From the sequence record MW812343.1: 64,000 bases of DNA. One strand, written 5' to 3'. Shown here piece after piece: positions 4,237 through 63,985 of this stretch (positions within the stretch are counted from its first letter, which is position 1; each line of letters starts with the position of its first letter). The notes beneath the pieces were generated by a model. It made no database searches, was not told the DNA's origin, and worked only from the letters and a program-made list of their open reading frames with translations. A program made the position numbers and the translations under genes.

Positions 4237-4257
4237 GATAGATATTATCTTGGTGAG
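4236..4257 (+). promoter_or_regulatory. Early-promoter-like motif (copy 1)
   Basis: AGATAGATATTATCTTGGTGAG, similar to motifs at 12974, 46078, 60262, 62038. Confidence 0.55.
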
Positions 4258-62754: not shown

Positions 62755-62761
62755 GAAAATC

Positions 62762-62790
62762 GGGGAGCTTCGGCTCCCTGTTTTTTTTTG
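62762..62790 (+). terminator. Rho-independent terminator, UUCG loop
   Basis: GGGAGC-TTCG-GCTCCC plus T9. Confidence 0.9.
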
Positions 62791-63790
62791 TTTTTTGTTG
62801 TCCTGTCGTGACTACTCGAGCAAAGTTGTTCACTTTTTAACCATGGGGTAAATTCGCTCTCAAACGGTTTTTGAGATGGGGTTCTACCGACCCAGTACAC
62901 TTGGGTTCCAGATACCCAGTTCGTTAAGCAGAGAGTCGCACAGCGCGAATTTGAGCCGGTTGCAAATCGATTTCCGGGCGAGGGTCGTCGCCGAGCGCCG
63001 CCGATGCCGATCAAACGTTGGGGTGCGCTTGCGCGTTTTCAGGATCAAATTCAGGAATTCTGGACAAACGAATCTTCGTGAGTTTGTCTGAATTTGGTTG
63101 TTTTTTAACCGACTAAACTCCCCGGCCTCTAGCCGGGATCGAGATCGGCTTAATTTAAAAATTTTTATTTTAAAAACAAGCACTTAGGTGAGATCTTATC
63201 CCCGATCCTGAACCCCCTCCGGGGTTCAGGTAAAAAGTCCTTTCATTATACGCGTGCACGCGCACGCCATTTCCTACAGGATCTTTTAAAAGAATAATAA
63301 TTATTATTAAATATATATATCCCGTAGGGATAATATTTAATTATTAAAATATATAAACCCGTAGGGTTTTAAATAACTATCGCGCGTGATCCTTATTACG
63401 AGATCTGATCCGGGAAACGGGGATCGGAGGGAAATCGAATTACAAGTTTTCCCAGTTCTATGCACGACGAACCAAACGCTTGCCCGAATCATCCTCGGGC
63501 CTTTTTCGAGAATCCACGATGCGGGTTCTGGACAAAGCCACCGGGACAGCCTAACACTTCCCAACGCGTTTCAGGTTCCGGTCAGAGACTCGGTGGTTGC
63601 CATCGACGAGACCGGTACCGTGGTAGCCCCGTGTACACCGGAGTAATCTCCAACGGGAGGTTGATCCACATCTTGGCGGCTCGGAAAGACGAGAGGGGGA
63701 TGTCCTCACGCTGTGAAGCGCTGGGATGTCGCTGAATCGGATTTTTTACAAACTTGGGTGTTCCTGTGTTCAAACCCAATCACCAGTACC
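62791..63790. other. ~1-kb non-coding region, candidate replication origin/control locus
   Basis: No credible gene; 11 GATC in 63009-63425, AT-rich core 63284-63380, multiple inverted repeats. Confidence 0.5.
63304..63369. repeat. Two AT-rich direct repeats, each with a CCC-GTA-GGG hairpin (37-bp period)
   Basis: TTATTAAATATATATATCCCGTAGGGATA and TTATTAAAATATATAAACCCGTAGGGTTT. Confidence 0.8.
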
Positions 63791-63802
63791 AGGGAAATCA
63801 TC

Positions 63803-63985
63803 ATGACTCCAGAACAACGTCGCCGCCGCGACGAGGAAGAACGCTGTCGTCGTCAGTCCTCACAACGCGGTTACACGCCGGGTTATAACCCGGTCGATGA
63901 TTCGCCGTACTACGGCGGAGATGATTCGTCACCTTCGGGTTGCGATTCCGGTTCTGACAGTGGCGGCTCTTGCGGCTGCGACTAA
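63803..63985 (+). CDS. Small protein with Arg/Glu N-terminus and Ser/Gly/Asp/Cys tail
   Basis: RBS AGGGA before ATG 63803; 60 aa; next gene starts at 63998 with RBS GAGG. Confidence 0.65.
   Translation: MTPEQRRRRDEEERCRRQSSQRGYTPGYNPVDDSPYYGGDDSSPSGCDSGSDSGGSCGCD

Follow-up and report, generated by a model that had tools for sequence, protein, structure and literature searches.

The two C-GTA-G hairpins near the end of the window, h1 and h2, are best read as dyads in the core of a candidate replication origin of SPN3US-like nucleus-forming phages, an interpretation to which we assign a probability of roughly 0.45. The window, the whole 64,000-nucleotide stretch analysed, is identical in sequence to the final 64 kb of the 240,164-bp genome of Erwinia phage pEa_SNUABM_6 (MW812343.1); adding 176,164 to a window coordinate gives the coordinate in that record. 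pEa_SNUABM_6, of the genus Machinavirus, is an SPN3US-like/phiKZ-like Erwinia jumbo phage and a giant nucleus-forming phage, and encodes a PhiKZ-type major capsid protein, a divergent family B polymerase, and pieces of a multisubunit RNA polymerase. The hairpins are located in a gap between gp281 and gp282, and a syntenic gap of 1–1.7 kb was present in Machina-, Erskine-, Seoul-, and Wellingtonviruses. The features of the locus are as follows, in window coordinates.

62761–62790: strong terminator after gp281
62791–63802, unstranded: gap of approximately 1.05 kb without annotated genes, from the gp281 terminator to gp282 (which starts at 63803)
63137–63425, unstranded: GATC cluster, five sites to the left and four to the right of a 108-bp GATC-free core
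63160–63186, + strand: P-box, an A/T box ending AACA-N6-TA, conserved in most relatives
63247–63267, unstranded: alternating purine-pyrimidine tract of 21 nt (67% GC), unmatched in length elsewhere in the genome
63272–63281, unstranded: box0, palindrome TCCT-NN-AGGA with the letters TCCTACAGGA, overlapping the invariant AGGATCTTTT
63281–63380, unstranded: AT-rich core, candidate unwinding element; no other 100 bp of the 240-kb genome are richer in A/T
63282–63308, unstranded: two more palindromes within the AT core: TCTTTTAAAAGA, then an A/T palindrome of 16 bp
63318–63332, unstranded: h1, TATCCC-GTA-GGGATA, 6-bp stem, GTA loop on the + strand
63355–63369, unstranded: h2, AAACCC-GTA-GGGTTT, 6-bp stem, GTA loop on the + strand
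63381–63411, unstranded: conserved right boundary box (CGCGCGTGATCCTTATTACGAGATC...)
63438–63506, + strand: promoter-like AATTACA-N14-TATG (predicted start 63462), followed by an intrinsic terminator at 63482–63506

Three genome-wide extremes coincide in this gap: the AT-richest 100 bp, the densest GATC cluster, and the longest alternating purine-pyrimidine tract. The GC fraction of the core was 0.17, the genome minimum, versus a genome mean of 0.506, and its A/T richness was kept in all relatives while the sequence varied. The GATC cluster, the top one genome-wide, contained 9 sites in 300 bp versus about 0.5 expected from the genome's own rate; over the whole genome, GATC occurred at 45% of expectation (424 observed versus 937 expected). 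In the Caitlin/pEa9 clade, the cluster was down to 1–2 sites. Alternating purine-pyrimidine tracts are prone to Z-DNA, and a similar tract was found in all relatives. In addition, the phage encodes a Dam-like adenine methylase outside the window (100132–100953 of MW812343.1), a full-length homologue of E. coli Dam (2g1p; E = 1.6e-61). Every boxed motif of the locus was single-copy in the genome. Box0 was kept in all relatives with a varying centre (AC, CC, or TC), the TCTTTTAAAAGA palindrome was kept in most of them, and Huxley-type phages carried a different 16-bp palindrome at the second A/T palindrome site. The locus thus bears the classical signature of a single-copy cis-acting site, which could be either an origin containing an unwinding element or a pac site that, as in P1, depends on Dam.

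The hairpins h1 and h2 and the TCCTACAGGA box had been reported by the first-pass annotation, the box as a degenerate inverted copy, and all three were recovered with exactly the same positions and letters. h1 extends into an imperfect 42-nt palindrome (63303–63344). When both strands were searched for C-GNA-G triloop hairpins with a perfect stem of at least 6 bp, only three were found in the 240-kb genome, two of which were h1 and h2, located 37 bp apart; simulated genomes yielded a mean of 1.7 such hairpins genome-wide. The pattern WWWCCC-N3-GGGWWW occurred nowhere else in the genome. The DNA fold z-scores were −1.9 to −2.5, with energies of −3.4 to −4.2 kcal/mol, and when the AT core was dinucleotide-shuffled, a 6-bp stem appeared at the same position in 11% of cases (P = 0.11). 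The evidence for the hairpins from this single genome is therefore only modestly above chance. The GC-cored dyads box0, h1, and h2 were spaced 48 and 37 bp apart, and h2 is probably a tandem duplicate, of about 37 bp, of h1; hence, the two copies are not independent. The computed cost of extruding h1 was about +11 kcal/mol for the 15-bp core and +24 kcal/mol for the 42-bp form, and the relief estimated at a sigma of −0.06 was about −11 and −31 kcal/mol, respectively, in a rough balance that ignores the junction cost and any GNA loop bonus. According to this balance, h1 could extrude only if unconstrained supercoiling were high or the A/T flanks had opened first.

Comparison with relatives was more informative. 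The module was carried by the Machinaviruses Huxley, pEa10, pEa43, pSal-04, Caitlin, pEa9, and pEa4, the Seoulviruses SPN3US, SPFM4, SPAsTU, and pEa29, the Erskineviruses Asesino and phiEaH2, and the Wellingtonviruses Kwan and pEa11. It was also present in two 222-kb circular "plasmids", one of Enterobacter ludwigii (NZ_CP134650.1, 85693–88817) and one of an E. coli isolate (NZ_CP173450.1), which are probably jumbo-phage genomes kept or assembled as episomes. The E. ludwigii isolate came from a gull and the E. coli isolate from urine, and both plasmids carry the SPN3US-type h1. At cross-genus distance, blastn retained only this non-coding stretch of a 1.3-kb query. The left half of the module consists of the A/T box AACA-N6-TA, a variable hairpin, and the alternating purine-pyrimidine tract, in this order, and the right half of TCCT-NN-AGGATCTTTT, the A/T core with its dyads, and a CGCG...GTGATCCTTATTA box.

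A dyad was located 40–48 bp to the right of the conserved AGGATCTTTT box in the four genera and the two 222-kb plasmids. Its letters differed among lineages, and the forms at the h1 and h2 positions were as follows.

h1, Machinavirus, SPAsTU, and pEa29: TATCCC-GTA-GGGATA
h1, SPN3US group and E. ludwigii episome: ATAATACC-TTTA-GGTATTAT
h1, Erskinevirus: TAATATC-TTTA-GATATTA
h1, Wellingtonvirus: TAATTATA-TTTA-TATAATTA
h2, most Machinaviruses: AAACCC-TAC-GGGTTT
h2, Caitlin/pEa9 clade: AACTC-TAC/TTT-GAGTT
h2 position, SPAsTU and pEa29: perfect 20–22-bp palindrome
h2 position, Erskinevirus: second copy of h1
h2 position, SPN3US group: A/T-only palindromes

A positional dyad test on six lineages gave per-lineage P values of 0.009–0.15, and their Fisher combination, calculated by hand, was about 3e-4, a value that is indicative only because the lineages are related. 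Since the MAFFT alignment of all h1 copies set the groups with 3-nt and 4-nt loops out of register, base pairs were counted per group and by script. In the TTTA-loop genera, 95% of the h1 cells were paired and both sides had changed in five of the eight pairs; this level of covariation was reached by none of 500 shuffles, and slid registers paired at 22–62%. Within Machinavirus, h2 showed one compensatory pair (C-G to T-A), which was not significant. Covariation across relatives, put forward in the first-pass annotation as a check, is thus real for h1 among the TTTA-loop genera and amounts to that single non-significant pair for h2. Judged by sequence comparison, the hairpin dyads are real and have been maintained in evolution, and it is the comparison, not the single genome, that shows their non-randomness.

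The loops behaved differently from the stems: those of the relatives were TAC, TTT, TTTA, or none. The first-pass annotation had argued for selection on structure from a loop retained between stems of differing sequence. Selection of dyad symmetry was borne out by the relatives, whereas retention of the loop was true only of this lineage. The conserved feature is therefore dyad symmetry, with the C-GTA-G loop as a lineage-specific detail, and for the narrower hairpin claim our result is corrective in this respect. The GTA loop of h2 in the window is not a sequence error, because two metagenomic relatives (approximately 98% identical) share it; these two showed no substitutions in 63239–63405, versus about 2% elsewhere. 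GTA and TAC at h2 represent an exact loop inversion inside an unchanged stem, for which fold-back, template switching, or conversion from h1 would be the simplest explanations. Minute loop inversions occur at hairpins in chloroplast non-coding DNA, where, as here, the loop differs between close relatives by its exact reverse complement while the stem is unchanged. The present setting differs in being a phage and in offering conversion from the neighbouring h1 as an alternative route.

Promoter-like elements were also compared. An early-promoter-like motif, consisting of GATAGATATTATC (or GATATATATTACC) and then TNGGTGAG (...GGTGAG), occurred in about 26 copies genome-wide, all on the + strand and usually after a terminator and a T-run; copies in the window include those at 4237, 12976, 46079, 60263, and 62039. 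It agrees with the AT-rich early motif that PMC7598289 describes for virion polymerases of jumbo phages. A canonical early promoter at the locus was rejected, as all of these copies were elsewhere. A second promoter-like class, TTTTTAC(A/G)-N14-TATG, was found at, for example, window positions 1157, 8978, and 17448 and resembles the middle (−24 A/T motif) and late (TATG) elements of phiKZ. Its variants at 63438–63462 and 63743–63768 pointed away from the core, and from the former, together with the terminator that follows, an outward-directed RNA of about 45 nt is predicted. The P-box resembles the AR9 late promoter consensus (PMC7598289) and may be a promoter directed inwards, to the core; because it does not recur in the genome, it was rejected as a member of a recurrent promoter class.

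Going beyond the observed composition extremes, uniqueness, synteny, dyad conservation, and Dam homologue, we infer the following mechanism for an origin. The row of dyad-symmetric elements (box0, the two A/T palindromes, h1, and h2) fills the AT-rich core, and the A/T core of approximately 100 bp would serve as the unwinding element. Breathing of the A/T flanks would let the GC-cored dyads form hairpins or a cruciform, unless they instead serve as binding sites for a dimeric initiator; in either case, the dyads would keep the core from closing and expose single-stranded signals. Opening might be modulated by the Z-prone tract and by the GATC sites on both sides of the core, which the Dam-like enzyme of the phage would methylate. 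Since no primase was recognisable, the primer could be a transcript started at a flanking promoter, or an RNA polymerase could make it on the opened strand; a related jumbo-phage RNA polymerase can start on single-stranded DNA (PMC7598289). Pfam six-frame searches of the genome gave no match for the DnaG zinc ribbon, Toprim_2, Prim-Pol, or DnaB_C, a negative that weighs little for the primase because the same approach also missed DnaB_C, Helicase_C, and Terminase_6C, although a terminase must exist.

The origin is favoured because the relatives keep the A/T richness of the core but not its sequence, compensatory changes preserve the dyads, and promoter-like boxes flank the core in a genome without a recognisable primase. 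T7 and T4 oriF/oriG are promoter-plus-A/T origins, and the present locus is alike in that promoter-like boxes flank its candidate unwinding element, in a genome in which no primase is recognisable. It is also similar to E. coli oriC and P1 oriR in its extreme A/T core, GATC-rich flanks, and available Dam enzyme, and its left border begins with GATCT followed by T/A-rich sequence. In contrast to these two origins, it has no DnaA boxes or iterons, its GATC cluster is not universal in the family, and replication takes place inside the phage nucleus. Blastn against E. coli chromosomes or oriC detected no similarity, the 222-kb phage-like episomes being the only matches. Neither classical direct-repeat iterons at the locus nor a known initiator gene near it were found, and the cumulative GC skew had no inflection at the locus and followed gene orientation, a weak criterion for phages. 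Several further points count against the origin: the shrinkage of the GATC cluster in the Caitlin/pEa9 clade, the ease with which A/T-only palindromes arise by chance, and the weak statistics of h2. Furthermore, T4-like and giant phages may largely use recombination-dependent replication, and a phage Dam with flanking GATC clusters would fit a P1-type pac site equally well.

In the literature searched on SPN3US-like phages, we found no origin, pac site, or description of this region, and in that on phiKZ/SPN3US-type nucleus-forming phages no replication origin or pac site was found named. The locus offers a short, precisely bounded, single-copy target in which the stems, loops, GATC sites, and Z-prone tract are separately mutable. 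It makes testable where replication or packaging starts in the phage nucleus, as well as control by secondary structure or methylation, and it could be useful for replicons or vector engineering in these therapeutic-candidate phages.

Alternatively, the locus may be a headful pac site, at which terminase would recognise the GATC flanks in a methylation-dependent manner and cut the A/T core, the dyads being bending or recognition elements; we consider this unlikely. In phage P1, the pac site has GATC hexamers flanking the cleavage zone and is Dam-dependent. The locus resembles it in having two GATC clusters around a central zone of approximately 100 bp and in the presence of the phage's own Dam-like methylase, and differs from it in the contexts of its GATC sites, which are not the P1 hexamer, and in not lying within a terminase gene; no known terminase gene was found beside it. 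That the locus is single-copy also favours a pac site. The near loss of the GATC cluster in the Caitlin/pEa9 clade also speaks against packaging. These phages are permuted headful packagers (PMC5690319, PMC6614189), and several independent records, namely those of SPN3US, EC001, Lh1B, JN03, SPFM2, and SPFM16, begin or end inside the locus. However, assembly failure in extreme A/T palindromes would explain such breaks equally well, base pair 1 of the Utah Erwinia phage genomes was copied from SPN3US (PMC5690319), and two metagenome contigs cross the locus unbroken. The record ends are thus ambiguous between an assembly artefact of A/T palindromes and a hint of physical ends. The SPFM9 record was scrambled or rearranged exactly within the locus (797–1100 of the stretch examined), which points to assembly trouble.

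Another explanation, to our judgement quite improbable, is that the dyads are operator-like sites, not hairpins, for a dimeric phage DNA-binding protein regulating the flanking promoter-like elements and small RNAs. It would account for the half-site (A/T)TCC(Y) or TAYC shared by box0, h1, and h2 with a 4–5-bp centre, and for the conserved arms and variable 2-nt centre of box0, which are typical of protein sites; promoter-like elements do flank the core. On the other hand, the h2 half-sites diverge freely between relatives (AACTC, the 20-bp perfect palindrome, and the A/T-only forms), the centre spacing shifts among 3, 4, and 0 nt, and the nearest predicted start site is 90–190 bp away from the sites. 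Nor would this reading account for the extremes in A/T content, GATC density, and purine-pyrimidine alternation.

A bolder version of the origin proposal, which we regard with considerable doubt, would make this the first origin mapped in a nucleus-forming jumbo phage, with h1 and h2 as single-strand signals that direct bidirectional primer synthesis. The Dam-marked A/T core would open, h1 and h2 would fold into mini-hairpins, and primers would be made by the phage multisubunit RNA polymerase or by an unrecognised primase. If true, replication inside the phage nucleus would start in an ssi-like, primase-independent manner. The oriV of RSF1010 has paired ssi signals, ssiA and ssiB. The locus is similar to it in its two small hairpins beside an A/T segment, with favoured loops on opposite strands in most relatives; unlike RSF1010, no RepB'-type primase or iterons were found here, and both favoured loops are on the same strand in this genome.

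It is very unlikely that the C-GTA-G hairpin itself is read by an RNA polymerase or primase as a supercoil-extruded promoter or priming signal in the manner of phage N4. N4 early promoters are extruded with a stem of 5–7 bp, a 3-nt loop with 5'G and 3'A, and a closing C:G pair, and such small hairpins extrude at physiological supercoiling (PMC4496689). On the + strand, both h1 and h2 conform to these published extrusion rules (PMC4496689), so that the loop chemistry pointed out in the first-pass annotation was correct, and the A/T flanks would favour extrusion. In addition, AR9 nvRNAP can use single-stranded templates (PMC7598289). In the arrangement that is commoner among the relatives, the + strand carries the GNA loop at h1 and the − strand the one at h2; this opposite-strand arrangement, probably the older one, resembles the paired ssi signals of RSF1010 oriV. 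The N4 virion RNA polymerase contacts a purine at −11 (the loop centre), G at −8, and C at +1 (PMC4496689), whereas h1 and h2 have the pyrimidine T at the loop centre. When we transferred the published numbering to these hairpins, −8 fell on a C, and +1, counted 11 nt from the loop centre in the 5' direction, fell on a T in h1 (63314) and on an A in h2 (63351). At h1, the GNA loop was missing from Erskine-, Seoul- (SPN3US), and Wellingtonviruses; at h2, most relatives lacked it. A six-frame search with PF00940 (T7/N4-type RNA polymerase) gave no match, although control genomes gave no signal either, and no single-subunit N4/T7-like RNA polymerase was found in seven of the eight largest ORFs. 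Furthermore, the element is not upstream of early genes, it belongs to a unique A/T island and not to a promoter set, and the early promoters of this phage have a different motif. The N4-like promoter suggested by the first-pass annotation is therefore not supported, and its fallback, a recognition signal for the replication machinery, would fit the origin-like context.

The least probable explanation is that h1 and h2 act at the RNA level, as weak terminators or another RNA structure, or that they arose neutrally in A/T-rich DNA prone to slippage: a terminator scan flagged both hairpins on both strands, TTTT follows h2, and two-letter sequence is often palindromic, as the shuffles of this genome alone indicate, but the T-run follows h2 alone and is not conserved, each stem has only three G-C pairs and is far weaker than the real terminators of the phage, no Rfam match was obtained, and a neutral explanation is made less likely by the fixed position and the compensatory changes seen across genera. 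An intrinsic terminator was rejected, as there was no GC-rich stem with a conserved T-run.

The surroundings of the core were also inspected. An Rfam search at a permissive threshold returned chance matches only, no tRNA was found in the 64-kb window, and no known function was found for the proteins neighbouring the locus. A repeated box ending TTTTTAACC was observed at 62823–62842, upstream of an ORF-like stretch, and again at 63091–63110, upstream of the P-box. The ORF at 62876–63091, encoding 71 amino acids, is annotated in Huxley and pEa10 and had no family match; its 11 substitutions in two close relatives fell on four third, three first, and four second codon positions, and this even spread suggests that it may not be coding. 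At 63386–63735, two different reading frames matched the two ends of phrog_27350 (gp278 in Huxley), and pEa_SNUABM_6 is without approximately 130 bp within this region. The same region holds the promoter-like box, the terminator at 63482–63506, and the predicted RNA of about 45 nt, and it is more likely to represent a non-coding RNA than a gene.
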